This document shows, in pieces, positions 3,301 through 58,127 of a DNA stretch of 64,000 nucleotides. Numbering within the stretch: position 1 is the stretch's first letter; each line of letters opens with the position of its first letter. The DNA comes from Macrostomum lignano (Eukaryota). Where the stretch lies: contig NIVC01002677.1 of NCBI GenBank assembly GCA_002269645.1, positions 62,001 through 126,000 on the forward strand, in the 5' to 3' direction. The notes beneath the pieces were generated by a model, which was not told where the DNA came from, made no database searches, and saw nothing but the letters and a program-made list of their open reading frames with translations. The position numbers were made by a program, and so were the translations under genes.

Positions 3301-4659
3301 AGATGAGGCACTTTGAAGGATACTTTTTAATTCTATACTATTCCCTTACCTAAGTTATATTTGCAGCATATCAGCATTTCACAAAAAGATGAGTAGTGGC
3401 GTAAAGGACAACTGTAGTATAACTGGACGGATAACTCAACGATCATGTGATTTTTTTGGAGGCCGATTTCCTGGGAAAATACACGGCGGATACAGGAAAG
3501 AATCGTTTTGTTTTTCATCACAACATCAATAACTGCATTTGATCTGGGCCAGTGAAGATTATCATTCTTTTTATTTACCGTACAATGGAATCTAACAGAC
3601 AGCTGATACTGAGTTGAGCAGTTTAAAAGTGCATCTGCAACAGGGTTTTCCTACCTACATCAAGATAGCTTTGAGACCCAATGATCCGGTTGTTTTCGAT
3701 GACTTTAATAAAGGAAACTTCAAATTCAGAGTTAGATAGACAGATAGATGGGTAGGTAGGCAGGCAGGTAGACAGATATTACTTCGAGTTAAAAGCTAAT
3801 AAAGTGCCAGCCGCAAGGAGCTGTCACTCACATCGCCAGCAGATGCTTCAACCTTCTTGAGCGCCCAGCCTCTCTCCCCCCCCCCCGTATATTGAACAGC
3901 GTCACCCGCTTCACTTCAAGCAGCCGCTTCCTGCTTCCCGCAGGCACAATGGCCGGCAGGAAATTGGCTTCGTGAATAGCGGCATCGGTCCCGAAGAAGC
4001 AGCGGCTCTATAAATTTGACTGATGGGACGATGAGCATTGTGGAGCATGCGAGAGCGGAAAAAACTTTCCAAAGGAAATTCTGTAACTAATATACTGCAG
4101 TCTATTTTTATCCTCAGAATCTATATTTAGCATCCAGTAGAAAATACATGTATACTCCGAAAAACTATGAGTTGCGCAGTCAAATATGGTGAGCGACCGG
4201 ATTAAACAAGCTGAGTCAGAGACCGGCTTTCTATGCGTCGAGATGTTTGCCTGTCAAAAATTGAAGCAGAAATCTGAGTTTGAAAAGGCTACTCTTTTAT
4301 CGAACTAGGAATTGGCGTCACACGACCCGGATAAGAATGCTCGCCTGATGAAGCCGAAACTCTGCTCAGGCTTTGGGTAGCTGCTGCATGGGGGTGGGAG
4401 AGGAAGTGCAGACCGCTGGTCGAGTTGGGAGTCGAAATTGGGATTTCTTAGAGATTGCCAATAGCGGAAGACGGGGAGCTGACCAAGTCCTGAGGTTCAA
4501 GAGTTTGAGCTGTGAGCTGTGTGGAACAGAAACTCAGCCATTAGATTTGATATTGCTTCTCTAATTGGAGATTGGAGAAAGTTTTTTGCTTTGATAAGCG
4601 ACTGGTATATGAGGTCGGAGACTCTAGACTGGAGATAAAGAGACAAGACATGAGGGGAG

Positions 4660-5465
4660 ATGAGCTGGGAAGAGAGGGAGATTGGGTTGAATGAGGGTGA
4701 CTGGGATGAAGAGGGGGGAGATTGGGGTGAAAAAGGGAGGGATTGGGTGAAGAGGAAGAGATTAGGTGAAGAGAAGGAGATTAGAGGGAAGAGGGAGATT
4801 GGGGTGACTAAGTGGAGATTGGGGTGAAGCGGGGGGAATCGGATTGAATAAAGGGAGATTGGAGTGAATAAGGGAAGATTGGGGTGAAGGGGGGGAGATT
4901 GGGTGAAGAGGGGAGATTGGAGTGAAAAGGGGAGATTGGGGTGAAGAGGGAGAGATTGGGTGAAGAGAAGGAGATTAGAGGGAAGAGGGAGATTGGGGTG
5001 ACTAAGTGGAGATTGGGGTGAATAAAAGGAGATTGGGGTGAAGAGGGGGAATCGGATTGAATAAAGGGAGATTGGAGTGAATAAGGGAAGATTGAGGTGA
5101 AGAGGGGGAGATTGTGGGTGAAGAGGTTAAGATTGGGGTGAAGGGGAGACATTGGGGTGAAGAGGGAGAGATTGGATTGAATAAAGGGAGATTGGGGTGA
5201 ATAAGGGGAGATTGGGGTGAATAAGGGGAGATTGGGGTGAATAAGGGGAGATTGGGGTGAATAAGGGGAGATTGGGGTGAAGAGGGAGAGATTGGATTGA
5301 ATAAAGGGAGATTGGGGTGAATAAGGGGAGATTGGGGTGAATAAGGGGAGATTGGGGTGAAGAGGGAAAGATTGGGGTGAAGAAGGGAAGATTAGGGTGA
5401 AGAGGGGGAGATTGAGGTGAAGAAGGGAAGATTGGGGTGAAGAGGGAAAGATTGGGGTGAAGGTT
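4660..5465. repeat. Purine/G-rich minisatellite (GGGAGATTGGGGTGAA-type, ~20-bp unit)
   Basis: Tandem units visible; strong purine strand bias. Confidence 0.9.
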
Positions 5466-11800: not shown

Positions 11801-14407
11801 AAAATAAAATACGCTGTCAGGGAGGCCGGATTTTTTGCTTTTACAGATTGAGAATTTGTCCAGAAAAAGTTTCTTAGAGACAAAGAAAGAGCATTTCGGA
11901 AAAAAAAGCTAGATAAGCTTGTAAGTGCATCTCGGACAAAACACCTACTTGCTTCATTTATTCGATTCAGAAGTTCGGAAGCTGAGATATAGCCAATTTA
12001 GTGATACGAGCGTAAAAATATAAAGCAAGATTGAGGCTAACCGAAGTCATCAATAAGGTGACTTCTGTCAAAGTCACATTCTACTCAAGGCCCGACTCTT
12101 GCCTATCCGATCCCACTCCATCCGTTCACTGGATTGCCTACTCAATGACAAGAGGTTCATAGTGTCTACTCAAGCTCAAGCAAGCCCACTTCTTACTCCT
12201 GCTTTTCCTCATGCTAGCCGCGAGAGGATTTCAGCAGCAGCTGTCAAGACAATTGCTGAGAAAAATGAATGAAGTCAGAGATGCCTCACTGACTAGCCGT
12301 GAACGAGCGCTTTGTTTCGGCGAGGTCTTCAGTTTAACAAGCGCAGCAGGATGTGCCTTGTGCATGAAAGATGAAGTATTTCTACGCTTTTACGAACAAA
12401 TGCATTGAGAAGCGACAGGTGCTGTGTTTGCGAGGTCGACAGACGTACAGGCATTCAACATATAGTACCGGTATGGGATACAGCAGGGACGCTAAAACTT
12501 CACGGTTCTTCAAAATTCGTGTGTTAAAATTTTCAGAAAAGTACACGTCCATAAGCCACATAAGCCAAGACTTACTTAGGCCGATTAAATGCTTATCTTT
12601 TTCATATGCATGAAACGAATTAGCGTATGTAATTACCTGATTTTATGCTCAGTTGAATTTGTAATCGTACAAATTATTCCAAAATATTTCATTATTTCAT
12701 CATTTTCCTTTTGTGTTCTCTCTTTTGGTCTAAATCCGCTTCAAAAGAAGTCGCGATAAAACTTCACGGGAGCTTGACGAGGGCTTACAGGGGGAATTGC
12801 TGAGATTCCAAGGCTTATAGGGGACTGCTGAGATGTCAAGACTGTCAAGACAGGTCAGAAGCTACATGCTTACCAAACTTAAAAATTTCCCTTTGATTTT
12901 TTTCCCTGAAAAGAGATTACTTATCGATGATTGCAGCGTTAGTAGAGAAAAAAATGGTGGAGGCTGAAACCGTCAGGCGACCGATAACTTTGGAAGAGCT
13001 GTTGGATCTATTCGATGAGCTCTTCAGCCCGTGTGTCAGCAAAGTTTTCAAATGCAGTCTGAGCCAGTTGACCCGACCGCTAGAACGTGCAATTTCAAAA
13101 CGCAAAAAATGGATCAAAACAGTATTGTCCTGGGATGCAATCACTCACGAATGCGAGAGCGGCTGCTATGAGAACCGTCTCTTACGTGGTCCACTTTCGA
13201 CCCCTCGGGGCAAAGGAAGGCGACTCCCAACTGAGAGCAAATGGACCACACCTCCGTTACCAGGGAATCTTCCCCAAGCATCCACAGTTCGTCCGCCTCA
13301 AGGACCACTAGGAACACTTCGTTATATAAGGACGTAACACTCTCGATTCGTGTAAAAATAGTTGAAGGCCGATTTTCGTTCTGGTATACATTAGTGAGAT
13401 AGATGAATTGGATGATTTTCAACATATATGTGCTGTTTGCAGAAGCCTAAGGGCTATTACTTTCCAAAATTTTGCAGTATGTAACCAGAAGCTCTTAGCT
13501 AAATTATATTTTTGTTGTATAGTCCTATTACGAGCTATTAGGTTATTTACCGTTTTGTACATTACTTATGACTAGGCTATATAGGCCTATGCTATGACTA
13601 AGGACATGTTTATCGACTGGGAACCTTGTAATAAATAATTTATAGGCCTAGACCTATCTGATTTCTGGCTAGTCATAACCCTAACTGCCTTAACTAACTA
13701 ACTTCATTAGTTCAGAAGTGTTCCTAGTGCTCCTTGATTAAACTACATGTACATGTACATTTAGCTCGTGGTCGACTCACGCCTGTCGACTGTCAGTCTC
13801 TCGGTGCTTAATGTACACTGCTTTTATCGATTCCTCAGCGCCCCTCGCTTGGCTGAAACAGAATGTACATCGTCTTAATACTTTTACAAACACAAAATTT
13901 TAGTGGCAATTGTTCATAACAAATTTCCCGATGCTTGCATTGTTATACTGATTCTCATGGTTCTGAAACTATGACTGTTTTGAATCTGAACTCAAGCGTC
14001 TCGTAAGATTCTGCAGCACATGCTAATGTAATCATAACTTAATCATAACAATAGCTAGTTCATTGAAATAGAAAATATCTATTGAAAAGGGAATGCTTCA
14101 GGATGACTAATGCATTATTAGCAAAAAAATCACAGAAAATCCGTTAAAGAAGCAAAATACTCATATTTAGATACCAAACGACTCACACATATTCTTTTCG
14201 GTGCATATTTTGTTTAAAGTGTCCCCGCCTCAGCAACTTGATGCGTGCGATTTTAATTTTAAGGAAAACTGGAGTTTTTCCAAGGTAATTTATCAACGCT
14301 ATCCTTGCGAATGCGATAAAATATTTTTGGATAGCGCAAACCGTAGCAAAGGCGATACCCAAATTTTATCATTTTTCAGTCACAACTTACTTGCAAAAGT
14401 TTTCGTA

Positions 14408-17400
14408 ATGAAAATTTACACTTGGGAGTCTCTCAAAGAGTTTCAACAGAGGGACTGTAAGCAAAAATTAATTGTTATTGAGGGAAAAGTGTATGATGTA
14501 ACTAAATTTATGCACAAGCACCCAGGTGGAGCAAAACTTTTAGGAGCCTATGCCGGAGAAGATGCAACTGTAAGTTTATCTAATAAAAAATGTCAATACC
14601 ATGTTCAATAAACTATAGTCTAAGTCTAGCTATTTGCATGTACTCTGTACTGTAAGCTGTAGGCCTAATCTGTTATCATTTATGCAGTGGCCTCAGCTGG
14701 CCTAAGCCTATTTTAGCTATATCTTTTTGCTTTGTTTCTAAGATTTTTGGACTTATTATATTGATTTTGAAGAGGCTTAACATAGCTTGTAATCCATCAA
14801 TTTTTTTCTAGATATACACCTTTATAGGGCTAGTCTACATTTAAATTACATTCAAGTGTGACTTAATTTGTCTAAAAATTTAAATAGGGGGCCTAATATC
14901 TAAAATTAACTCACTCAAAGAGCGTTGTAGCTCAGCTTTATTTATATCTGACATGCTTAGCCTATACATCCTTGTTTAAGAAAGTTTTTTTATTATTTCT
15001 ATAGAATAGAGATCTTTTATATCTATATTATTAGATCTTATGTATAATTGTTTAGGTTCTAAATTCTAACAATAGTACTCATAATTTTTAAGACAAAAAA
15101 GTAATAAAAAAAATTTTATATGTCTATAATTATGTTAAATTATTAGACCAAGGATGAGGTGTAAAAAGTAGGAATTAAAACTCTTTGGGCCTTCCCACTG
15201 TAGAAATAATCTAGGTAACAATAAAATTAAGAGACTTACTTCTAATAATCTTGTAATTAGCCTTTTAGCTATCTTTAAAACCTTTTAAAATTCCTGTGGT
15301 GCTGTTACTTTAGTTGAACTAATATAAGGTTTTATTTTTTAGTATAATACTTCTTGACTAAACTAAGCAATTTATTTCAACCTTTCTTTGAATGTTCATA
15401 AAGCAGAATTATTTACATTAAATAATTGCCATTATAATTTTCTTTTTCATCATAGGATGCATGGGTTGCTCTGCACAATGACAAAGAGCTTGTGGAGAAG
15501 TACATGAAGCCATTGCAATGTGGAATTGTTGAAGATTATGAGAAACATGTGGTAAGCTATTCAATTCCATTTTCTAAATGTAACTCTTACTTTAATCTTA
15601 ATTGCATATGTGAAAATTGAAAACAATGTTTAATTTAATAATCAAATGCTGACCTTTGAGATCAGACTCGAACTCAATATTAAACTGTTTATCCTACTAC
15701 TAATTAGTGCTTGTCAGTAGGCAGTATTGAACATCTATGCATCTAATTTATCAATGTCGGTATTTCAGTCGCCCAGCCAGGCGGATTTCCGACGCCTACG
15801 CCAGCTGGCCGAGTCGTCCGGCTGGTTCCGCGCCCGGCCGCTGTTCTTCATCAAGTACCTGCTCCAGTGCTGGGCATTCGAGTTGGCCGCTGTGCTGCTG
15901 CTATGGCAGTTCGGCCTGCACATCTGGACTGTACTGCCAGCGGCCCTGCTGCTGTGCACCGCCCAGGCTCAGGCCGGCTGGGCTCAGCACGACTACGGCC
16001 ATCTGAGCGTCTTCAACAGCCGCCGGCTGAATCATATTGGCCACGAGCTCGTTGTCGGGCACATGAAGGGAGCCAGCTCGCACTGGTGGAATTTTCGGTA
16101 CAGTTTTTGTTATTGGTTTAAATGCGCTGTTTTTCTACTATCAGTAGTGTTAATCAGGTTTTTGTCTACCAAAAGAGGATAAAAGTAAACTAAAACAGTT
16201 ATATCCTTACTTTCAGTAGCAGTATAAGAATAAAGTGATAAAAATGGTTTTATTTTACTCTTACTAGCAGTTAACAAATAATTAATTTCGGTCTTCAGAC
16301 ACTTTCTGCACCACTCCAAGCCGAATGTAGTTGGCGCCGACCCGGACATCAATGTGCCGTATCTGTTCTTGCTTGGCGACAAGATGCCGCAGGAATGGGG
16401 CAAGCGCAGACGCGGTTTCATGCCCTACAACTGGCAGCACGATTACTTCTGGCTGCTTGGGCCGCCAATGCTGCTGCCGCTGTACTTTCACTACGAGAAT
16501 ATCTACTTCATCTTCAAGCGAGGCGACTGGCGCGATTTTGTCTGGACGCTGTCGTTCTTTTTGAAATTTTTCTACGTTTTTAATCATTTCTTTCCGTCCT
16601 GGCTTGCCACGTTTGGATTCTACATGCTTGTGCGGTGAGTGCTTATTGCGGTTTATGGCAGTTGTGAGGCTTTAAATGGGCCACCATAAACGTAAAGGGC
16701 TGACATTAAAAGATTGTCTTTAAAGGAAGTCGAACAATAAAGGCACCGAAGTGAGTCAAATAGACATCAGGGGCGCCAAATGGAGATTAGGGGCGCCAAA
16801 GAGACTTCAGGGGCGCTAAATGGACACCATAGGCGCCAAATAGACTTCAGTGGTGCCAAACAGACATCAGTGGCGCCAAACAGACATCAGTGGCGCCAAA
16901 CAGACATCAGTGGCGCCAAATGGAGATTAGGGGCGCCAAAGAGACTTCAGAGGCGCCAAATGGACATCAGTGGCGCTAAATAGACATCAGTGGCGCTAAA
17001 TAGACTTCAGTGGCACCAAACAGACATCAGTGGCGCTAAATAGACTTCAGTGGCGCCAAATAGACATCAGGGGCACCAAACAGACATCAGTGGCGCTAAA
17101 TAGACATCAGTGGCGCCAAATAGACTTCAGTGGCGCCAAACAGACATCAGTGGCGCCAAACAGACATCAGGGGCACAAAACAGACGTCAGTGGCGCTAAA
17201 TAGACATCAGTGGCACCAAACAGACATCAGTGGCGCCAAATAGACATCAGTGGCGCCAAATGGACATCAGGGCGCAAACAGACGTCAGTGGCGCTAAATA
17301 GACATCAGTGGCGCCAAACAGACATCAGTGGCACAAAACAGACGTCAGTGGCGCTAAATAGACATCAGTGGCACCAAACAGACATCAGTGGCGCCAAATA

Positions 17401-18631
17401 GACATCAGTGGCGCCAAATGGACATCAGTGGCGCAAACAGACATCAGTGGCGCCAAACAGACATCAGTGGCACAAAACAGACGTCAGTGGCGCTAAATAG
17501 ACATCGGGGGCAACAAACAGATATCAGTGGCGCCAAACAGACATCAGTGGCGCAACCAGACGTCAGTGACGCTAAATGGAGATTAGGGGCACCAAAAGAG
17601 ACACCAGGGGCGCCAAATGGACATCACTTTGCTTTATCTATAGGTTACTGTAATTATAATTATACTGTACTAATAGATATCCTGTAATTATGAAACGGAC
17701 TCCTGCAGTTACCTGGAGTCGCACTGGTTCGTGGCCTGCACCCAGATGAGCCACATTCCCATGGACATCGACCGCGACCAACGGCGCGAGTGGCTGCCGA
17801 TGCAGCTGAAGGCCACCATGAATGCCGAAGGCGGCTCATTTAACGACTGGTTCACCGGCCATCTCAACTACCAGATTGAGCACCAGTGAGTTGCTGCAAC
17901 CGGGTTCTTACATCTAGTTTCTCCACTTAACGTTGTCTTGTTAGTGCGCGTTGGTCCGGGTTACTTATTGAAGCCTCCCAGATGCTCGGGCTTGACCGCC
18001 CGCCACCTCCACAGATCCTCAGTTGCTGAGCCAGCCTCCCAGATCCTCAGTTGCTTGGGCAGCCTCCCAGATCCTCAGTTGCTGGGGCAGCCTCCCAGAT
18101 CCTCAGCTGCTAGGGCAGCCTCCCAGATCCTCAGTTGCTGGGCCAGCCTCCCAGATCCTCAGCTGCTGAGCCAGCCTCCCAGATCCTCAGCTGCTGGGGC
18201 AGCCTCCCAGATCCTCAGCTGCTGGGGCAGCCTCCCAGATCCTCAGCTGCTGGGCCAGCCTCCCAGATCCTCAGCTGCTGGGCCAGCCTCCCAGATCCTC
18301 AGCTGCTGGGCCAGCCTCCCAGAATGTCAGTTGCTGAGCCAGCCTCCCAGATCATAACTCACAGGGTCAATATTGTTTCATATTTTGGCTCAGACATTCA
18401 ACAGTATAGTTGTGCTCACTTTCGACCCCCCTCCCCACCGCGCCGAGCAGCCTGTTCCCCACCATGCCGCGCCACTCCTACCCGCTGGTGCAGCCGCACG
18501 TGAAGCAGCTGTGCGCCAGGCACGGCATCCCCTATGTGGAGAAGCCGCTGTCGACCGCCCTAGCGGACATCATCAGGTCGTTGAAGAAGTCCGGCGAGCT
18601 CTGGCTTGAAGCCTACCAAATGCCCGGCTGA
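14408..18631 (+). CDS. FADS2: Front-end (delta-5/delta-6 type) fatty acid desaturase with N-terminal cytochrome b5 domain; exons 14408-14569, 15456-15551, 15769-16097, 16299-16634, 17709-17885, 18451-18631 (~426 aa)
   Basis: HPGG heme motif in exon 1, His boxes HDYGH, HFLHH and QIEHH, and C-terminal LFPTMPRH. All introns are GT-AG with consistent phases, and the exon sum is divisible by 3. Delta-5 versus delta-6 specificity cannot be read from sequence, so the symbol is family-level. Confidence 0.95.
16758..17626. repeat. 20-bp minisatellite (CAGACATCAGTGGCGCCAAA) in FADS intron 4
   Basis: About 40 units visible. Confidence 0.95.
17970..18355. repeat. 27-bp minisatellite (GGGCAGCCTCCCAGATCCTCAGCTGCT) in FADS intron 5
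   Basis: Directly visible. Confidence 0.95.
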
Positions 18632-19616: not shown

Positions 19617-19896
19617 CTCATTGGCTAGCGGCTTTGCCCCACCCCACGCCAGCAATAAAACCAGCTAAAAGGCCGTCCTCACCCAACGCACTCATTGGCT
19701 AGCGGCTTTGCCCCACCCCACGCCAGCAATAAAACCAGCTAAAAGGCCGTCCTCACCCAACGCACTCATTGGCTAGCGGCTTTGCCCCACCCCACGCCAG
19801 CAATAAAATCAGCTAAAAGGCCATCCTCACCCAACGCACTCATTGGCTAGCGGCTTTGCCCCACCCCACGCTAGCAATAAAACCAGCTAAAAGGCT
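19617..19896. repeat. 74-bp tandem repeat, ~3.8 copies
   Basis: CTCATTGGCT recurs at 19617, 19691, 19765 and 19839. Confidence 0.95.
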
Positions 19897-20066
19897 CGTC
19901 TTCTCAACCAATACGAGTAAGTTTATATCTTTCTACATTCATTATACACACTTGGTTCAGAAGTATCGCCCGCCGTTGCCCCACTGCACTTTTCCCGCGA
20001 GAGATCTGCCCGCCGAGCAAATGCCCGTTTCCCCGTTTTTAACGATCCGGTACAATGCTCAGTGCT

Positions 20067-20318: not shown

Positions 20319-23300
20319 TCAGACTCGCTCTTCGGCAGACTTGCCACCCAGCTCAAAGTCGTCGTCGCCGCCGCCCTGGTGGCCAAGCAGCGGCATGCTC
20401 TCGCGGCGCGGATTGCGCACCGTAGTGGCCAGAACGCTCGCCCTCATGGCCGCCACCTCCATCGAGGTCAGCGAGTCTGACGATGGCGACACGGCCAGAG
20501 CGGCGGCAGCGGCGGCGGCAGCACCAGACCCCCCAACGCTGCCGCTCTTGTCCAGCAAGTCACTGCCAGAAGCCGACTTCTTCGGCGCAGCAGCTGAAGC
20601 AGCCGCAGCCGTAGCAGCTGCCTTGGCTGTAGACTTTTTCTTGCCGACATTGCGCAGCTGCAGGAAGTCGAGGGTATTCACGATCTCCTTGCCGGTGCCC
20701 TGCAGCCGGCGCAGCAGGTGCTTGTGCAGGTGGGCTTCGACCTCCTCAGCCGACGTGAAATTGTCGTGCGCGTGCACCTGGCTGAAGTCGAAGGCTCTCA
20801 GCAGCAGAGACACCTGCTGTTCAACTGGCTCGCCATTGTCTGTGAGGCCCGGCGGGAACAGGCTGTCCTCGGCGCCGCCCAGCTTCACCGACGCCTTCAG
20901 GTTGGAGTTGAGAATGTCAGACAGGGGCAGGTCGGCCCGGTCCTTGCCCAGCGGGTTCAGCAGCATGATGCCGATCTTGAACCAGCCTGCCGGAGTGGGC
21001 GGTGACTGGGTCGGTGAGTAACTCCTCAATTGGTTTATTTGTTTCCAGTACCATTCTTTTTAACCGCTAGAGTTGCAGCATCCGAATTTTCGAAATCCCC
21101 ATATTTAAACGCACTGAATTTCTACAATTCATACTCTTATCTCGATCTCTTTTCTCCCTAGAACAGGGATCGCCAAACCCTGGCCCGCAGGCCGCATGTG
21201 CCCTGCAAAGCCTCTCTATCCTCTCTAATCTCTATCTCAATCCTATAAAAGGGCCTGTCAACTTAAGCTCACAAAGTGGAGCCCGAGTAACCTATGTACA
21301 CAAATGATACGTCATTCTGCTGACAGTGACACCAGGAAGCTGGGTTTGGCAAAAAATTAGACTTGGGATGATAGGGAATAACAAGCAAGGGCATAATTAT
21401 CGACTCTACTTTATAAGCTTAAGTTGGCAGGCCTTTACAAAAGTAATCCGGACTGCTTAATGTTTTTCTTTTCTCAGCTCTCTTTTTTTCTCTCTCCCCT
21501 CTTCTCAACTCTCTTCTCTCTTCTCACCCTCTTCTTTCCCCTCATCTGACCCGTAGCCATGAGCTAGATTATTTATCTGACCCCTGAAGTAACCAAGTTT
21601 GCTGACCCTTCTCTAGATCCTAAACACTTAATCCCTGATTGAACTTGTTGACCCGTATTGTACCACTTTTTCAAACTGTTTCAAAAAGACGCAAGCTATT
21701 GCTTTGAAAAAACCTCACCCAGGTAGAAAATGAACTCAAGCGAGCCGAGAATGGGAAAGTACGCCAGCAGCTCAACGCCCAGCACGGTGTCAATCACTGA
21801 AGACTGGGTCTCGTTGATGGACTCGGCAGCTGGGGCCATCGTTACCTGACGCACCATCTCCGGTCGGATCAACTGGGTTGACAGCAGGGTGGAGAACAGG
21901 AACAGGTACACAGCGGCCACCGCAACCTGGGTGTACACCAGCGGCACATTGAACTCGGTGTAGGACCACACGGTTCCCAGGTCGCCTCTGAACTTGTTGA
22001 TCATCTCCACTAAGAACAGCAGCTCACGCTCCTCAGCGATTAGGCCTTCAAAAGTTTTTTTGCGTATTGGTTGGATTTAAGATTCTTAACTGACAAGCAA
22101 CCGTGTTGCCTTGAAGGTTGGCCCTCATAAGCGAATTCGAAACAAATATGTGCCCTTTACACATAAATTTCAGTAGACTTAGAGATTAGAATGAAATTGT
22201 TCTAAGCACATTTTGTTGCACTCGCAATGAACATTCATGTACCATAAATAGTACTTGAACGAGTAGTCTTGCAGGTATATATTTTCATTCATTGTGCCTC
22301 CATATAAATGCCTGTAAGTACTTTAGGCAAAATGTGTTTGCTTAGAGAAAATTCAGTATGAGTACGAGTATGTTGAGTCTTAAGAGAAATATATTACTTT
22401 ATGCTACCCCTCTTTTATCTCTGTATCCTCCAGACACTCCGGTTGAATATTATAAATTGTGTAAATAAATTCTAATAACCTTATCAGCTATCAGTAATTG
22501 AGCGCTTCGTTTTTATGGCTTAAATGATTTATTATGATAATTGGGAGCGTTTTATTGCCCCAACAAGGATAAGAACTCAAATAAACTCCGAACTCCAGCA
22601 ACCCCTAAACTCCAACGAACCTTCGAAATACAACAAACCCCTTAAAATCCAACAACCCCCAAACTCCAACAACCCCTAAACTCAAACAACCCCTAAACTC
22701 AAACAACCCCTAAACTCAAACAACCCCTAAACTCCAAAAGCCCCCAAAATCCAACAAACCCCAAACTCCAACACCCCCCTAAACTCCAAAAACCCCCAAA
22801 ATCCAACAAACCCCCCAAATTCAACAAACCCCCAAAATCCAACAACCCCTAAACTCAAACAATCCCCAATACCCAAAATCCAATAACCCCAAAACTCCAA
22901 CAACCCCCAAAATCCAACGAACCCTAAACTCTAAAAAAGTCACAACAGAAACCCTGCAAAGCTCAAGATGACTGTTGAATAAAAGCATGCATTCCCAGAA
23001 ATAGGTTTCAACCATCCCCAGTCGCTCACCCAACATCCTAGACCGCTTAATGAGCCGGGTAGCCCAGGCGAGGGGCAGCCAGTACTCCGGACTGTAGGTG
23101 AGATCAGTGCTCTGCGACAGCTCGGCCGACCTGGCAAAAGTTTCAACTTCCTCAGCGGTCACCAATCGACCAAAATGTTTCTGCACCTTCTCGTCCAAAT
23201 TGATGAGGTCCAGCCTCTCGCGCCAGGTGAGCTCAAACTCGGGCTTCTTGCTATTCTTATTGCCGTCAGTGGAATCGTTGTCGGTCCCGGCTGTCGCAGC

Positions 23301-24277
23301 AGCTGTCGTGCCGGCGGAACGGTCCTGACTGCTCTTCTTGGCCTTGAGCGGCTGGTTAAAGCCAAACCGGTCCTTGATTTGCTGCGATATTGTGGCCATC
23401 ATCAGGATCCAGGATAGATTAGAATAGCGCAGTATTGTTATGCGAATTTTTCTTGCAATATCGCTTTTCACCGGATGGGTGCTCTCGACTAGGGCCTGAG
23501 TGTAGAACGACATGCTGCTGAGCCAGGGGATGGCCATGCACGTGCTCCACCAGCTGCGCGGTCATGTTGTAGCGGGGTGAAGTTGCTTTGTGAATTAAAT
23601 ACAGCTGGGTCGAACCAGGCAATGATAAGTGTATTAAACTTAAAGCACAATGGAAGCAGCTTGAGCACTGATAAACCAGTTGGAGTGTCAAAGAGGTAAT
23701 GGGCGCTGAGAAAGCAATGAGGAAGGCTGAGATGATTGATGAAGCAGTTGGAGCACCGAAAGGAAGCAGTGGAGGCTGGAGCACCAAAAGGAAACAGTGG
23801 AGCGCAGAGGAAGCAGTGGAGGCTCAGAGGAGCAAGAGTTTTAGTAAAAAAAGTTTGAAGAAAATCGGTTGAGCCGTTCGGGAGAAAATCAATTACAAGC
23901 AAGCAACCAAGCATTTCATTTTTAGTATATTGGATGATGCAATAGTTAAAAATAGAACTGCTTGGCTTATACCAGTAACTGCGTTTTCTTACTTACCGAC
24001 TAAACACGGTCGACACGAAGAAGCCCAGCATAAATGAGAGCGGCACAGAGGTGCGAATTTTGCTCAGCCAGCGCACTACAGCCTCGAATGTGATCATCCG
24101 ATGTTCGTGATTAGCCAAGGCCTGGTGATAAATCACAGCCAAAATGACGTAGGCCGTAACAAAGAAAATGTAGTCGACCCAGAGCATCTCCCATACGCTG
24201 CCAGTCCATCGGAATAGCAGCTTCAGGAAGAACAGTCGATCTTTCGTGTAGATCTTTGACGCGTAGCTGACAACCAT
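20319..24277 (-). CDS. BEST: Bestrophin family anion channel; exons 24277-23997, 23553-23030, 22045-21719, 20986-20319 (599 aa)
   Basis: Motifs MVVSY..KLLFRWTGS, VPLSFMLGFFVSTVFSRWW, YWLPLAW, VPLVYTQV and FYLGWFK..LLNPLG. Splice sites are GT-AG and the exon total is 1800 nt. Confidence 0.93.
22590..22935. repeat. C/A-rich degenerate minisatellite (AAACTCCAACAACCCCT) in bestrophin intron 2
   Basis: Directly visible. Confidence 0.88.
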
Positions 24278-26605: not shown

Positions 26606-27995
26606 TCAACTCATCGTCAGCTCATGCTCACCTTCGTCGGGACCCACGCCTCGTTGGGCATTGATAGAGTTCCTGAAAACCTTGGATTAAAGCTTCTGAT
26701 TTGCGGGTGTGAGGGTGGAGCTGCATGGTTGCTATGCAATTTAAGATGGAAAACGATTTCCATTAATGCATACACAAAATATAGCGCGTAAATCACCTGA
26801 ACAACGGCGTTGTGCGGCCTTTGCAATCGCTGGGACTCGCTGAACAATCGGGAGGGAGGCTATAGGAGGAAATGGGGATAGCAACTGAGGATTGTTTAGT
26901 CTCACCTTCGCAGACCGACGGCAGATTCAGGATGCAAGACTCCACCCGCCAGTTGCCATCGCTGTCAAAAGTCACGCAGTCGTCGCCTTCGTTTGGCTGC
27001 TCGGGCCGCCAGACGCGCTCGCCCAGCGGCTGAAGTCGTCCTTGACGTAGACGCTGCCGTCAGTGCGCTGGAAGTAGCCTGTAAAGGGCATTCAGTTCGG
27101 TTTTGGTCCAAGCTGCCAGGCTTAGTGGAGTTGACACTGATTTTGAGTCATAAACATATAAAGTATAATAGAAGTACAGTCTTGATCGAGCTTGTCTACT
27201 CTAAAACGTATTGAAGAAGCGAATCTGTGTGAAATCCGGACGTCTAAAGAACGCCTAAGCATTATACTTGGTGTCGGTCTTCAATGCTATATTCTCGGAC
27301 GCAATACACACTTTCTTCACTTAAATTCGGAAGCCCAGAAGGTGAAATATTGTCAAATCAATTTAATACTGAAATCCCAGAAATCAGCGAGTGTAAGTAT
27401 CCTCATATTTTAGTTGTCCGTAGTTTGAGTAACAAAATTGCGCTGCAAGTCATGCCTAGATTTCGTACGATACTACTTTTAGTTTCGAGGGCAGAGCAGG
27501 TCAGCGGTAACTTGTCTGTCTCTCGCGCCGTGACTCGCAGGTTCGATTCCAGATTCGTTTGGGGCTTTTTGCACAAAAATTAGACAGCGATTTGTTGTGC
27601 AATTCAACCTCCAAACCTCTTAAGGCCCAGAAAATGTACATGTCAGGGATGCTCTACACCCTGTGTGATCGTGTATATGAGTGTGTGCCTGCCTACACTA
27701 TCCGCGCCTCACCTTCTCGCGCCTGATCGTCCATGCCAACGTAGGCCTTCTCAACCTTCTTGCCGAGCAGGAACGCTTTCACTCGGTTGTTAGTGGCCAG
27801 ATCCTTGATCGTGACCAGCCGCATTCCCTTGTCGTAGCAGGACTGGATGCACTGGTAGCGGCTGGAACCGGTGCACAGACTCATCTGACCCGGCGCCGAT
27901 GTCACAACGGCGTCGGTGGGATCAGACGCCAACATCAGCGTCAGCAACAGCGGCAGCAGGAGCCGCTGCGCTGCCGTTGCGAGCTTCTCCAACAT
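26606..27995 (-). CDS. Secreted C-type lectin domain protein, frameshifted as assembled (exons 27995-27713, 27078-26906; probable 26839-26797, 26672-26606); possible pseudogene
   Basis: Signal peptide, then SC..KGMRLVTI, AYVG, EG-YFQRTDGS, W-RPEQPNEGDDCV, GNWRVESC and LPSVCE. Exon 2 is 173 nt between two phase-1 splice sites, so 1 nt is missing. The 3' exons are less certain. Confidence 0.72.
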
Positions 27996-31096: not shown

Positions 31097-34000
31097 TCAG
31101 ATCTCCACGGCAGTCCTGGCGGAGCTCACGGAGGCCGACAGGTTCGGCAGCGAGGCGCTGAACGTAGCGAGAGGCAGCGACGGCGCTTCCGGTGGCGGGG
31201 GCGGCGGCGGCGGCAGGACCTCTGCCTCGACAACAATCCGCTGGGAGGAGACGCCCGAGTCATCGTCTTCGTCGTTGCAGTCGGTGCTGTTGTCTTCTGG
31301 ATCGTAGTTGCTGTCAAAGTCCAGACGCGAGTCGCCGTCGTCTCCGATGGCCGTGACAAAGTCCTCGGTGTCCTCGTCGCCGCCACCAGCCTGGAAGTGA
31401 GGCAGCGCCGAGTTGCCTCCTACTCCGATGGTGGCAGCATCCTCCGAGTCGCTAGTCTCTGGCGTGATGTCCAGTCGGAAGTTCAGCAGTTGCTTATCTG
31501 TCGCGGCCGTTGTCATGCAGTTATCGAAGGCCACGGAGTCCAGCGCCTTGAGCAGGTAAGCCTGCTGAGCTTTGTACTGGTCTCGCAGCCGCTCCAGTTG
31601 GGTGGCCGCGTAGTCTTTGATGCGCAGCAGCTGCTGGTTGTACTGCTCACGAACTCGCTCCACCTGAGGAATACACAGAATGCACCGTGCTACTATCCCT
31701 ATGAAACTGTTTGAGTGCGAGAAAGTTGGCATCGAGCAGAATTATTAGCATAGCTAGGAGCAAGTGCCTGCGCCTATTCTGTGAGAAATCAGCTTACTAT
31801 AAGTCATGACAAACTCTCGAGTCCAGTGTGTAGTGTACGGCTGTAGGTCCTATGCTTAAAAGTGTCCACCTTTGACGCTAGCTCATGATTTTCCTCAAAG
31901 AAACCGTGTGCAGGATATTGAATTAATTATTCAATTTCGAAAAAATCGTTCATAATGTATTCGCGAAATTGCTTTCTGAATGTTTGGCCCACTATATCTT
32001 ACCGTTGTATCAGGACGTAACTCTCGTAAATATTGCAAAATGTTTTGAAGGCTTTTTGTCTGCAAAAACCAATGCTTTACTGTACGCCTGCCGTTCCCTA
32101 CATGTAGATATGGGGCCAATGTTTGTGTCAGGCACATACACACTCTGTGGCTTGGGAGTTGGTCCATAATGATCCTTTCAACGACAAGCCCCGGGGCCAA
32201 GTTCATATCCATGCGTGAGGACAAAATTAATGTATTAATGTTAATGTTAATCCTATACGCTCCTATAGTGCCACGAATTGGATCCAAGAACTTAGACACT
32301 GAGCAGGGCTGAGCGATTACTCGGTTCTCGGTTCTTGTTTGCGAGTATAATCGAGTTTTGATGAGTATTAGACGAGTTATTATAATCAACAATTCACAGC
32401 TGAACTGTCAAGTTTTGATGTCGACGGGATTGAAGCTTTGAAAGTAATAACATTCACTATTGGAGGTGGACAAGCTCAATAAAGGTGGTATCCTTAAAGT
32501 GCAGACAGTAAAAAATCAATGGAATACGCGTGGGAGAGGGCAACTGGAGGACTAAGGTTGCAGCGACAATCGTTACAATCCAGTTGGAGAGGCTCTCTCA
32601 GTCTTGTCTCTCGCTCTACTGAATTATTGATTTCCCTAAGTGCACTTGGCCTCCATTTTGGGTTTCCAGTCAGTTGCTACGAGCATTTGGTCAGCCAGAA
32701 TTTCATTAATAGTATTCTCATGGACAGCTGAACTCTCAACCCTGCACTGTAAAGTACATTTAATCAGGTGCTCGAGACGATACGCTGAATTTGAACCTGG
32801 TAACACTATTAGGCCTTAGGTTACTTCTTCGTATTGTTGTTTTAAGTATTGTTGGTTGACTGTAGCCTTTTGCAGCGTGTCAACTAACAACATTGTGGAG
32901 TGTAACTAACTAAGGTCAATGATGAACTAATCAGCAATCAATCCCCAGACCGTTGTCTATGGCCAAAGCTCACTCCCCCATAGAATTCCATAGACACGAG
33001 GATGCAGGATGGCAGTCCCGACAAGATGGTGCTTTACTTAAACAACCCACCTGGTTCGACTTGTAGTCCTTGATTCGGCTCATCTGGCTATTGTAGCTCT
33101 CCCTCAGCCGTTCAATCTGGCAGTCGCAGTGGTCGCGGATCTTGGCGATGCGTCTATTGTAGTGCTCCTGCATGAGCATCATGTTGCCAACGCAGGCCTC
33201 CTTGACTTTGCCGACCCTGGCGTTGTAGTTGTCCAGCTGGTTGTGCCGGTAGGTTCGGAACCAATCTTTGCATTCGCGCAGCTGCTCCATCTTGGCGCCA
33301 CGGTAGGCTTCAAGGTGTTCCAGCATCTCCTTGATTGACTTCTGCTTTCGCCGTTCCTTCTCTGAGCATTTCCTGATGATCAGGCGGGTTAGGCCGATGA
33401 CTACGGCGATGCAGAGTAGGGAGGCTGCGCTTAGTGCACCCACCATCATGCCGTACTTCTTGACCTCGCGCAGCACTTCGTATTTGAGAGTGAACACCAG
33501 CTGTCGGATGGAGAGGCGGTGTTTGTGGTGGGATGTCCATTGGGTTCTTATGTAAGATGCTGCTGGATTCTAAAGTGAGGTGTCCGTTGGATACTAAAGT
33601 GAGGTTTTTTGTTGGGTTCTCATGTGAGGAGTCCTTTGGATTCTTATGTGAGGTTTTTTGTTGGGTTCTCATGTGAGGAGTCCTTTGGATTCTTATGTGA
33701 GGTGTCCGTTGGAAGCTTGTAAGATGTCCGTTGGATACTAACGTGGGATGTACCAAAGTACCTAATTTTGGTGCCTACTACATTCTAATGAGAGGTGTTG
33801 GTTAGATTCTAATAGGGTGTCCGATAGATACTAAATGTGTAATGTCCGATGGGTTCTAATTTTGATTTTCCTTAGATGTACCGTCTTTTCTAAATCTTTT
33901 CTCACCTCCCTGACGACCGGCGGTCCGATCCCATTGTCGGCGATGCAGCGGTAAAGGCCAGCGTCTGCTCTTGTCACATAGTCGATGTACAAAGAGCCAT

Positions 34001-54787: not shown

Positions 54788-57700
54788 CAGTCTGTAAACT
54801 GTCACTAGCACAGTCTGTAAACTGTTCGCTAGCACAGTCTGTAAACTGTCACTAGCACAGTCTGTAAACTGTCACTAGCACAGTCTGTAAACTGTCGCTA
54901 GCACAGTCTGTAAACTGTCACTAGCACAGTCTGTAAACTGTCACTAGCACAGTCTGTAAACTGTCACTAGCACAGTCTGAAAAAACTGTCACTAGCACAG
55001 TCTGTAAACTGTCACTAGCACAGTCTGTAAACTGTCACTAGCACAGTCTGTAAACTGTCGCTAGCACAGTCTGTAAACTGTCACTAGCACAGTCTGTAAA
55101 CTGTCACTAGCACAGTCTGTAAACTGTCACTAGCACAGTCTGTAAACTGTTGCTAGCATAGTCTGTCACTAGCACAGTCTGTAAACTGTCACTAATGCAG
55201 TCTGTAAACTGTCACTAGCACAGTCTGTAAACTGTTGCTAGCATAGTCTGTCACTAGCACAGTCTGTAAACTGTCACTAGCACAGTCTGTAAACTGTTGC
55301 TAGCATAGTCTGTCACTAGCACAGTCTGTAAACTGTCACTAGCACAATCTGTACACTGTCGCTAGCACAGTCTGTAAACTGTCGCTAGCACAGTCTGTAA
55401 ACTGTTGCTAGCATAGTCTGTCACTAGCACAGTCTGTAAACTGTCACTAGCACAGTCTGTAAACTGTTGCTAGCATAGTCTGTCACTAGCACAGTCTGTA
55501 AACTGTCACTAGCACAGTCTGTAAACTGTTCGCTAGCACAGTCTGTAAACTGTCACTAGCACAATCTGTCACTAGCACAGTCTGTAAACTGTCGCTAGCA
55601 CAGTCTGTAAACTGTTGCTAGCATAGTCTGTCACTAGCACAGTCTGGAAACTGTCACTAGCACAGTCTGTAAACTGTTCGCTAGCACAGTCTGTAAACTG
55701 TCGCTAGCACAATCTGTCACTAGCACAGTCTGTAAACTGTTGCTAGCATAGTCTGTCACTAGCACAGTCTGTAAACTGTCACTAGCACAGTCTGTAAACT
55801 GTCACTAGCACAGTCTGTAAACTGTTGCTAGCATAGTCTGTCACTAGCACAGTCTGTAAACTGTCACTAATGCAGTCTGTAAACTGTCACTAGCACAGTC
55901 TGTAAACTGTTGCTAGCATAGTCTGTCACTAGCACAGTCTGTAAACTGTCACTAGCACAGTCTGTAAACTTTTGCTAGCATAGTCTGTCACTAGCACAGT
56001 CTGTAAACTGTCACTAGCACAATCTGTACACTGTCGCTAGCACAGTCTGTAAACTGTCGCTAGCACAGTCTGTAAACTGTCACTAGCACAGTCTGTAAAC
56101 TGTTGCTAGCATAGTCTGTCACTAGCACAGTCTGTAAACTGTCACTAGCACAGTCTGTAAACTTTTGCTAGCATAGTCTGTCACTAGCACAGTCTGTAAA
56201 CTGTCACTAGCACAATCTGTACACTGTCGCTAGCACAGTCTGTAAACTGTCGCTAGCACAGTCTGTAAACTGTCGCTAGCACAGTCTGTAAACTGTCACT
56301 AGCACAGTCTGTAAACTGTTGCTAGCATAGTCTGTCACTAGCACAGTCTGTAAACTGTCACTAGCACAGTCTGTAAACTGTTCGCTAGCACAGTCTGTAA
56401 ACTGTCACTAGCACAATCTGTCACTAGCACAGTCTGTAAACTGTCGCTAGCACAGTCTGTAAACTGTCACTAGCACAATCTGTCACTAGCACAGTCTGTA
56501 AACTGTCGCTAGCACAATCTGTCACTAGCACAGTCTGTAAACTGTAGCTAGCACAATCTGTCACTAGCACAGTCTGTAAACTGTCGCTAGCACAATCTGT
56601 CACTAGCACAGTCTGTAAACTGTTCGCTAGCACAGTCTGTAAACTGTCACTAGCACAATCTGTCACTAGCACAGTCTGTAAACTGTCGCTAGCACAGTCT
56701 GTAAACTGTCACTAGCACAATCTGTCTCTAGCACAGTCTGTAAACTGTCACTAGCACAGTCTGCAAACTGTTGCTAGCATAGTCTGTCACTAGCACAGTC
56801 TGTAAACTGTCACTAATGCAGTCTGTAAACTGTCACTAGCACAGTCTGTAAACTGTCACTAGCACAGTCTGTAAACTGTTGCTAGCATAGTCTGTCACTA
56901 GCACAGTCTGTAAACTGTCACTAATGCAGTCTGTAAACTGTCACTAGCACAGTCTGTAAACTGTTGCTAGCATAGTCTGTCACTAGCACAGTCTGTAAAC
57001 GGTCACTAGCACAGTCTGTAAACTGTTGCTAGCATAGTCTGTCACTAGCACAGTCTGTAAACTGTTGCTAGCATAGTTTGTCACTAGCACAGTCTGTAAA
57101 CTGTCACTAGCACAGTCTGTAAACTGTTCGCTAGCACAGTCTGTAAACTGTCACTAGCACAGTCTGTAAACTGTTCGCTAGCACAGTCTGTAAACTGTCA
57201 CTAGCACAATCTGTCACTAGCACAGTCTGTAAACTGTCGCTAGCACAGTCTGTAAACTGTCACTAGCACAGTCTGTAAACTGTTGCTAGCATAGTCTGTC
57301 ACTAGCACAGTCTGTAAACTGTCACTAGCACAGTCTGTAAACTGTTCGCTAGCACAGTCTGTAAACTGTCGCTAGCACAATCTGTCACTAGCACAGTCTG
57401 TAAACTGTTGCTAGCATAGTCTGTCACTAGCACAGTCTGTAAACTGTCACTAGCACAGTCTGTAAACTGTCACTAGCACAGTCTGTAAACTGTTGCTAGC
57501 ATAGTCTGTCACTAGCACAGTCTGTAAACTGTCACTAGCACAGTCTGTAAACTGTTGCTAGCATAGTCTGTCACTAGCACAGTCTGTAAACTGTCACTAG
57601 CACAATCTGTACACTGTCGCTAGCACAGTCTGTAAACTGTCGCTAGCACAGTCTGTAAACTGTCACTAGCACAGTCTGTAAACTGTTGCTAGCATAGTCT

Positions 57701-58127
57701 GTCACTAGCACAGTCTGTAAACTGTTCGCTAGCACAGTCTGTAAACTGTCACTAGCACAATCTGTCACTAGCACAGTCTCTAAACTGTCGCTAGCACAAT
57801 CTGTCACTAGCACAGTCTGTAAACTGTCGCTAGCACAATCTGTCACTAGCACAGTCTGTAAACTGTCGCTAGCACAGTCTGTAAACTGTCACTAGCACAA
57901 TCTGTCACTAGCACAGTCTGTAAACTGTCGCTAGCACAATCTGTCACTAGCACAGTCTGTAAACTGTCGCTAGCACAATCTGTCACTAGCACAGTCTGTA
58001 AACTGTCGCTAGCACAATCTGTCACTAGCACAGTCTGTAAACTGGCACTGGCACAGTCTGTGTCATTAGAGCAGTCTGTGTCATTAGCGTAGTCTGTAAA
58101 CTGTAATTAGCGCAGTCTTTAAACTGT
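54788..58127 (+). repeat. 23-bp satellite array (CAGTCTGTAAACTGTCACTAGCA) with a 16-bp deletion variant; left arm
   Basis: 3.3 kb of tandem units. Confidence 0.97.

Follow-up and report, generated by a model that had tools for sequence, protein, structure and literature searches.

The vertebrate bestrophins BEST1 and BEST2 are Ca2+-activated Cl- channels and form the closest described system to the protein analyzed here. In solved BEST structures, only the side chains of D301 and D304 bind the Ca2+ ion (PMC8496536), and E300, D302 and D303 make no contact with it (PMC8496536; PMC6771118). Mouse Best2 loses its Ca2+-activated current when D301 or D304 is mutated to Ala, and E306A behaves like the wild type (PMC2650406). 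In BEST1, E306 is the salt-bridge partner of R356 in the inactivation peptide RPSFLGS (PMC6219684).

Here, a bestrophin gene of the flatworm Macrostomum lignano is described, which lies on the minus strand of a 64,000-nucleotide stretch of DNA (GenBank assembly GCA_002269645.1, contig NIVC01002677.1, positions 62,001 to 126,000; hereafter the window, to which all positions refer). The gene consists of four exons separated by GT-AG introns and encodes a protein of 599 amino acids. The translation is identical to M. lignano PAA55995.1 (BOX15_Mlig013525g1; P0160 in the protein set), for which the existing annotation gives a bestrophin homologue. Judged from sequence comparisons, the locus most likely encodes a pore-competent bestrophin channel subunit of a flatworm subfamily that is expanded in M. 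lignano. The protein is rather probably a channel that binds Ca2+ through a minimal clasp of reduced acidity, and an acidic motif of its C-terminal tail, GDDDFE, would have no role in the sensor.

Family membership and predicted fold

The protein matched the Pfam family Bestrophin (PF01062) with E=5e-71 and 239.9 bits (cut-off 24.2), and the sequences of solved BEST1 and BEST2 chains in the PDB were matched at E ~1e-40 (HMMER). The structure was predicted with AlphaFold2 (AF2) as a monomer without ions, using an alignment of 84 sequences. This model superseded an earlier run on 11 sequences, which was too poor to be used (predicted local distance difference test, pLDDT, 52), and it reached a pLDDT of 75.8 and a predicted template modeling score (pTM) of 0.68. 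Superposition on BEST1/BEST2 chains resulted in template modeling (TM) scores of 0.82-0.86 (0.73-0.86 in the wider range), and comparison with KpBest gave TM ~0.75-0.80. The neck residues V78/F82/F86 and the coupling tryptophan W379 (W287 in human BEST1, hBest1) fit the family consensus and are invariant in the clade formed by the M. lignano protein and its paralogues.

The clasp loop and its ligand positions

The features of the clasp are:

20925..20957, minus strand: Ca2+-clasp loop N388-P-L-G-K-D-R-A-D-L-P398, aligned to NPFGEDDDDFE of chicken BEST1
20940-20942 and 20931-20933, minus strand: codons of D393 and D396, the equivalents of the ligands D301 and D304

The loop NPLGKDRADLP is encoded exactly where an earlier, sequence-only reading of this DNA had placed it, and it could be aligned residue for residue with the chicken BEST1 loop (HMMER). 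That reading had counted two replaced acidic positions; the alignment showed that three of the five positions of the acidic cluster are changed (E300K, D302R and D303A), and two further changes follow, F305L and E306P. The contiguous cluster E300-D304 followed by F-E is thus not present, and the loop instead reads K-D-R-A-D-L-P, with two of five positions acidic and L-P in place of F-E. The N-P-x-G turn is retained. All substitutions in the clasp fall on non-ligand positions.

To place these changes in the family, relatives were collected from a library of 1.84 billion proteins, in which 1483 were significant; the best 150 representatives made up the family alignment, and 146 of them were aligned at the clasp columns. 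The columns of D301 and D304 are each occupied by Asp in 143 of the 146, and both residues are kept here as D393 and D396. The other positions proved more variable: position 300 is E in 75, D in 39, K in 10 and G in 7 representatives, position 302 is D in 127, and position 303 is D in 100, E in 30 and A in 9. The claim that the protein lacks the canonical acidic Ca2+ clasp therefore stands in part. The acidic cluster is degenerate and unusual, but the wording is overstated because the equivalents of both ligands are present, and the loop is strongly conserved in the subfamily. In the AF2 monomer, the clasp loop was modeled with a pLDDT of ~93 between helices 367-387 and 399-414.

P398 (20925-20927) is an invariant Pro in the clade at the position of E306 in BEST1. 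A motif similar to RPSFLGS was looked for at the corresponding position ~52 residues after the clasp and was not found; RRESMPLL in the tail has only R-x-S-hydrophobic in common with it. In its place, a clade-specific block, GGAEDSxFPxGLTDxGExEExQ...FDFxxVHAHDxF, occupies residues ~414-456.

Conservation of the clasp in the flatworm subfamily

All M. lignano paralogues of the clade, which form at least six lineages with 50-62% identity, carry the clasp G-K-D-[K/R/E/Q]-A-D-[L/I]-P, and among the best 150 representatives K-D-x-A-D-[LI]-P is restricted to this clade. Across the paralogue lineages, identity to the query was 0.74-0.82 from W379 through the clasp and the 35 residues after it (block 376-435), 0.93 in the neck helix and 0.80-0.82 in the N-terminal extension, compared with a core average of 0.62 and 0.13 in the tail. 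The N-terminal extension is the part that donates a carbonyl to the Ca2+ site in bestrophins. From this pattern of conservation, it is concluded that the trimmed clasp loop is a selected subfamily trait.

M. lignano also holds the clasp types VDEEDFP, DDLDGLP and the near-canonical DDDEDFH (P0017), and Cichlidogyrus P0139 has a fully degenerate clasp, ETHSGFP. From the variants VDEEDFP, DDLDGLP, ETHSGFP and KEQSDLP, the last found in environmental relatives, it follows that the flatworm clasp loop has been diversified repeatedly; in the version of the clade under study, it is precisely the two ligands that have been retained. In the literature library searched, no paper treats bestrophin together with Macrostomum. 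The channel family is known, but its subfamily variant with the K-D-x-A-D clasp does not appear to have been described.

N-terminal position 13 (24239-24241) is Asp or Glu in 14 of 14 sequences with a K-type clasp, including the environmental KEQSDLP relatives. Among other bestrophins, 3 of 73 have an acidic residue here, and Gly, Arg, Ser and Thr predominate, with Arg in vertebrate BEST1. This residue could represent a charge swap coupled to E300K/D302R, although the association counts as a single phylogenetic event.

R275 (23454-23456), an invariant Arg in the clade, aligns to the cytosolic aperture (V205 in chicken and I205 in human BEST1). It was dropped as a special feature, since 12 further representatives have Arg there and family-wide the position varies strongly (F, V, L, R, Y, Q).

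The C-terminal tail and the GDDDFE motif

Three features of the tail were considered:

20322..20663, minus strand: predicted-disordered tail rich in Ala, Gly and Ser, residues 486-599, pLDDT <50 in both AF2 models
20385..20408, minus strand: R571-R-E-S-M-P-L-L578, the only tail element in common with the closest paralogue, P0003 (R-A-E-S-L-P-L-L)
20352..20369, minus strand: tail motif G584-D-D-D-F-E589, codons GGC GAC GAC GAC TTT GAG, preceded by GGC GGC

The GDDDFE motif pointed out by the sequence-only reading is real, although the range given there, 20349-20376, covers just GGGDDDFEL, and the full string of 16 residues, LLGHQGGGDDDFELGG, corresponds to 20343-20390. The distance of about 190 residues from the clasp was accurate (189 residues from D396 to D585), and 10 residues separate E589 from the stop codon. 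In the 84-sequence model, GDDDFE had a pLDDT of ~35-39.

Conservation of the tail was judged on the paralogues and on the ~99%-identical copies of the gene. GDDDFE is confined to this gene and these copies, and none of the six paralogue lineages with a trimmed clasp has it. Homologue searches with the core (residues 196-490) and with the post-clasp region plus the tail without poly-Ala recovered hardly any sequences, the known paralogues being missed as well. When metagenomes were scanned for the conserved block around the clasp, 511 pattern matches were obtained, none of which was a relative. When the two haplotypes were compared, codons 500-565 contained five non-synonymous changes, one in-frame codon indel (GCC) and one synonymous change, with the non-synonymous changes and the indel all located within codons 543-565. 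The last 34 codons contained no non-synonymous and two synonymous changes.

The motif was chosen after the fact, and its frequency was estimated in two ways. When the 189 tail residues of the protein itself were shuffled 200,000 times, DDDFE was obtained at a frequency of 1.0e-4, [DE]3-F-[DE] at 1.1e-3 and [DE]3-hydrophobic-[DE] at 0.8%. In the tails of 144 other bestrophins (33,720 residues), [DE]3-F-[DE] occurred once, in a genuine second bestrophin domain, and [DE]3-hydrophobic-[DE] was present in 14 tails. Runs of three or more acidic residues were found in 76 of 130 tails from proteins with a canonical clasp and in 7 of 15 from proteins with a degenerate clasp, and the acidic fractions were equal. 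A family-wide compensation, in which a degenerate clasp would be accompanied by more acidic runs in the tail, was rejected on these counts.

Two further ideas on the origin of the motif were set aside. Homology of GDDDFE to LGDDDSN of P0003 was rejected, since one of these motifs precedes the shared R-x-E-S-x-P-L-L and the other follows it. Triplet slippage could not be taken as the proven origin of GGG-DDD, since the codons (GGC)3(GAC)3 are not diagnostic given the codon bias of the gene (GAC in 23 of 27 Asp codons, GGC in 26 of 33 Gly codons); the only evidence for slippage in the tail is the GCC indel in an Ala run.

The shared element R-x-E-S-[ML]-P-L-L had a local alignment score of 34, which was reached by 12 of 300 shuffles. 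RRESMPLL fits the consensus patterns RxxS and RxxSxP, of the basophilic-kinase and 14-3-3 type, and [DE]xxxL[LI] of dileucine sorting signals.

An alternative exon that supplies a normal clasp, also raised in the sequence-only reading, was excluded within the 64-kb window by a six-frame motif scan and by tblastn with eight canonical and clade bestrophins: no second clasp-like exon was detected there, and the tblastn searches matched only the four exons of the gene. The same reading had proposed that the tail motif might act from a flexible tail in cis or in trans. The comparison does not support this: GDDDFE is absent from every paralogue, the tail is predicted to be disordered, and tail acidic runs are no more frequent with a degenerate clasp than with a canonical one. 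Its own reservation that the resemblance could be coincidental is favored by this evidence. The resemblance of the tail motif to the clasp is thus most likely incidental.

Gene model and genomic context

The gene model comprises the following features, with the insert and the single residues listed under their exons:

23997..24277, minus strand: exon 1, start codon ATG 24277-24275, residues 1-94, N-terminal extension and neck helix, supported by the GT-AG model and by tblastn with canonical bestrophins
24020-24046, minus strand: region of exon 1 containing the codons of the conserved neck residues V78/F82/F86
23030..23553, minus strand: exon 2, residues 94-269, from the gene model and tblastn
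~23258-23348, minus strand: low-complexity insert of ~31 amino acids in exon 2, residues ~163-193, specific to this paralogue
21719..22045, minus strand: exon 3, residues 269-378, from the gene model and tblastn
20319..20986, minus strand: exon 4, residues 378-599 and stop codon, from the gene model and tblastn
20982-20984, minus strand: codon of W379 (W287 of hBest1), in exon 4

Exon 4 contains W379, the clasp loop, the conserved block after the clasp and the entire C-terminal tail, and its sequence matches NIVC01002677.1 with 100% identity. The insert in exon 2, LKAKKSSQDRSAGTTAAATAGTDNDSTDGNK, lies in a cytosolic loop after R156-F157, is not found in any other clade member and was modeled with a pLDDT of 51-63.

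A second haplotype or homeologue is present on three other contigs of the same assembly, with ~98.8% identity including introns and flanks. In one of the four genomic copies, on contig NIVC01003022.1 (~4297-4982), one nucleotide is deleted in a G-run, GGGGGG, corresponding to window position 20534. The protein annotated from this copy, P0162, reads LVLPPPLPPPLW in the shifted frame and loses the tail. The downstream sequence is otherwise identical, and the deletion is probably an assembly error, not a true loss of the tail or the mark of a pseudogene.

Minisatellites are dense across the window from 1998 to 62659, with ~20 arrays of units of 3-74 bp, among them those at 22591-22931, 19617-19900, 18002-18353 and 54788-58061. 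Intron 2 of the bestrophin gene holds an array of 19 units of 17 bp, and 3.8 copies of a 74-bp unit follow directly beyond the 3' end of the gene. The array with 23-bp units has ~154 copies and extends over 3.3 kb. The strong local GC-skew spikes in the window are due to these arrays. The convergent downstream neighbor (~14285-18631, plus strand) encodes a front-end-desaturase-like protein of 467 amino acids with Cyt-b5 and FA_desaturase domains. The final exon of this neighbor extends to 18631, which leaves ~1.7 kb to the stop codon of the bestrophin gene, and its last intron contains the 28-bp repeat array at 18002-18353. Upstream lie a small gene (~26972-27995, minus strand), whose product in the other haplotype matches a C-type lectin (Lectin_C), and a gene for a 321-amino-acid protein without a Pfam match (~31097-33449, minus strand).

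Interpretation

In the preferred reading, the two carboxylates D393 and D396 would allow the clasp still to bind Ca2+ and to gate the neck, together with the N-P-x-G turn, W379, the N-terminal extension and the hydrophobic neck, which are likewise kept. The surrounding, non-chelating acidic residues have been exchanged for Lys, for Arg, Lys, Glu or Gln, and for Ala. It has been suggested in a review that peripheral negative charge concentrates Ca2+ and recruits the termini (PMC8496536); Ca2+ affinity is probably lower here, because this local negative charge is gone. E306P would remove the partner of the inactivation peptide, and because an RPSFLGS motif is missing as well, inactivation of the BEST1 type is probably absent or rewired. 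GDDDFE would not be a relocated clasp but a few acidic residues within a fast-evolving tail of low complexity and predicted disorder, and at most a generic acidic or trafficking element beside the weakly conserved R-x-E-S-x-P-L-L.

Several observations weigh against this reading. In hBest1, nearly all single substitutions within residues 293-308 are non-functional, including E300Q, D302N, D303L and E306Q (PMC2585866), and D302A is a recurrent Best-disease variant (PMC12410269); a K/R/A clasp might therefore fail as a Ca2+ switch. The near-canonical paralogue P0017 (DDDEDFH) coexists in M. lignano, so that the clade was free to change its function. With respect to the tail, the composition would lead one to expect exact DDDFE less often than it is met by chance only at p ~1e-4 to 1e-3, and the lack of non-synonymous changes in the last 34 codons compared with the codons upstream fits weakly with constraint on the tail end, although the difference is not significant (Fisher p ~0.11, own calculation).

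The strongest competing explanation, which is possible but unlikely, is that K392, R394 and A395 abolish Ca2+ binding and that the protein is a Ca2+-independent or regulatory subunit. D393 and D396 would then be kept as partners of the introduced basic side chains in intramolecular salt bridges, with these side chains serving as a tethered cation. The clasp would either always be ordered, making the channel constitutively activatable, or always be inert, in which case the protein would join heteropentamers with other paralogues as a silent or modulatory subunit. The loss of function in hBest1 E300Q, D302N and D303L and the pathogenicity of D302A are consistent with this, as are the invariant K at position 300 in the clade, the canonical-type paralogue P0017 in the same genome and the occurrence of sensor loss in flatworms (P0139 ETHSGFP, P0020 DDLDGLP, P0018 DSPLDLD). 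However, the invariant positions are exactly the two Ca2+ ligands, and the carbonyl-donating N-terminal extension is also highly conserved. A fixed salt-bridge partner at position 302 is unlikely, since this position is K, R, E or Q in the clade, and bestrophins that are canonical in other respects show natural variation at positions 300, 302 and 303.

It is less probable that the tail end is a trafficking or regulatory module unrelated to Ca2+ sensing. Here, R-R-E-S-M-P would be a phospho-dependent site (RxxS or 14-3-3 type), E-S-M-P-L-L an acidic-dileucine adaptor signal and D-F-E a di-acidic (DxE) signal for export from the endoplasmic reticulum (ER), enhanced by the DDD run. These matches can be read straight from the sequence and the consensus patterns are textbook ones; in addition, R-x-E-S-[ML]-P-L-L is the sole tail element that the nearest paralogue also has, about equally far from the C-terminus in both proteins (12 of 300 shuffles), and the segment is free of non-synonymous haplotype differences. 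On the other hand, short linear motifs of this kind often match by chance, the common element is weakly significant, and the DxE or acidic part is present in no paralogue.

A latch of exchanged charges, in which the acidic patch GDDDFE docks on the basic clasp (K392, R/K394) and regulates gating, is doubtful. Its polarity would be reversed with respect to the BEST1 pair R356-E306, of which E306 is lost here, and the adjacent RRES phosphosite would possibly exert control; the acidic residue at position 13 may have arisen within this electrostatic rewiring as well. Least probable of all is a displaced clasp element, with GDDDFE reaching the sensor of its own or a neighboring subunit and conferring or tuning Ca2+ gating: the improbability of exact DDDFE by composition, the last 34 codons without non-synonymous haplotype differences, the course of the BEST1 C-terminal extension toward the Ca2+ site of the neighboring protomer (PMC8496536) and the docking of the BEST1 tail peptide beside the clasp through the R356-E306 salt bridge (PMC6219684) speak for it, but the residues missing from the loop are non-ligands that need no replacement, the trimmed clasp is common to all paralogues and the tail motif to none, members with a degenerate clasp show no family-wide excess of acidic runs in the tail, the tail is predicted as disordered and undocked in the AF2 monomer, and the motif is separated from the clasp by ~190 residues and located where the haplotypes differ by indels.

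If the trimmed clasp indeed gates the channel, it would be a natural minimal Ca2+ clasp with only two ligand Asp residues and basic neighbors, and the subfamily would make it possible to tell the acidic residues that set affinity from those essential for binding; human mutagenesis had suggested that the whole clasp loop tolerates no change. If it does not, the subfamily would document animal bestrophins that escaped Ca2+ control with the loop kept. Either outcome bears on the reading of BEST1 disease variants at E300, D302 and D303. In addition, an expansion of the bestrophins is documented for a flatworm model that regenerates. Its importance is modest overall, as the tail-motif idea is without comparative support, and the locus is of interest to bestrophin biophysicists and not a new kind of system.

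Comparison with known systems

In the vertebrate BEST1/BEST2 channels (chicken BEST1, 4RDQ and 6N23-6N28; human BEST1/2, 8D1E-8D1O; bovine BEST2, 6VX5-6VX9), the Bestrophin domain, the predicted fold, the coupling Trp, the N-P-x-G turn and the two Ca2+-chelating Asp residues are shared with the M. lignano protein, and the hydrophobic neck is V/F/F here versus I/F/F (I76/F80/F84) there. Unlike these channels, with which it has ~23-24% identity, the M. lignano protein has two of five contiguous acidic residues left, basic residues at positions 300 and 302, F305L and E306P, no RPSFLGS peptide ~52 residues past the clasp, subfamily-specific inserts and the conserved post-clasp block GGAEDSxFPxGLTDxGE...FDFxxVHAHD.

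For the tail motif, the nearest published precedent is found in human BEST1, where residues 380-384 form a second, five-residue acidic cluster, an EDDDD-like run within the regulatory region 350-390 (Xiao et al., 2008, PMC2585866), which was noted as resembling a Ca2+ bowl. Binding of Ca2+ by this cluster was considered unlikely and a link to rundown was made, and hBest1 truncated after residue 390 showed gating like the wild type (PMC2585866). Both are acidic runs in a cytosolic tail, but the human cluster lies ~80 residues past the clasp in a protein with a full clasp, whereas GDDDFE lies ~190 residues past a trimmed one.

The centipede protein T1JF92 of Strigamia maritima (P0015, 845 amino acids) contains two tandem bestrophin domains, each with an NPFGDDDDDFE clasp; the tandem may be genuine or may stem from the fusion of gene models.

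The bacterial, Ca2+-insensitive KpBest and the flatworm proteins P0139 (ETHSGFP), P0020 (DDLDGLP) and P0018 (DSPLDLD) likewise depart from EDDDD, several of them with Pro306; these clasp-less or degenerate proteins have lost one or both ligand Asp residues, and the protein described here has lost neither. The environmental relatives P0022 and P0173 (ENA metagenome ERZ2272740; ~37-41% identity) carry the clasp K-E-Q-S-D-L-P and share with it K300, non-acidic residues at 302 and 303, D304, L-P at 305-306 and the acidic N-terminal position 13, but they have E at 301, a tail of ~50 residues and a gene that is intronless on its contig.

The nearest relatives outside the clade are found in the flatworm DDDEDF subfamily (Paragonimus KAF7261697.1, Spirometra VZI33875.1, Cichlidogyrus KAL3312613.1 and M. 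lignano A0A1I8JEY2; E ~1e-46 to 1e-59, 35-37% identity). The signature S/D-ILxxNL past the clasp and the INxDxxV insert are common to both, and, unlike the protein described here, the DDDEDF subfamily keeps five acidic residues at 300-304 and F305.

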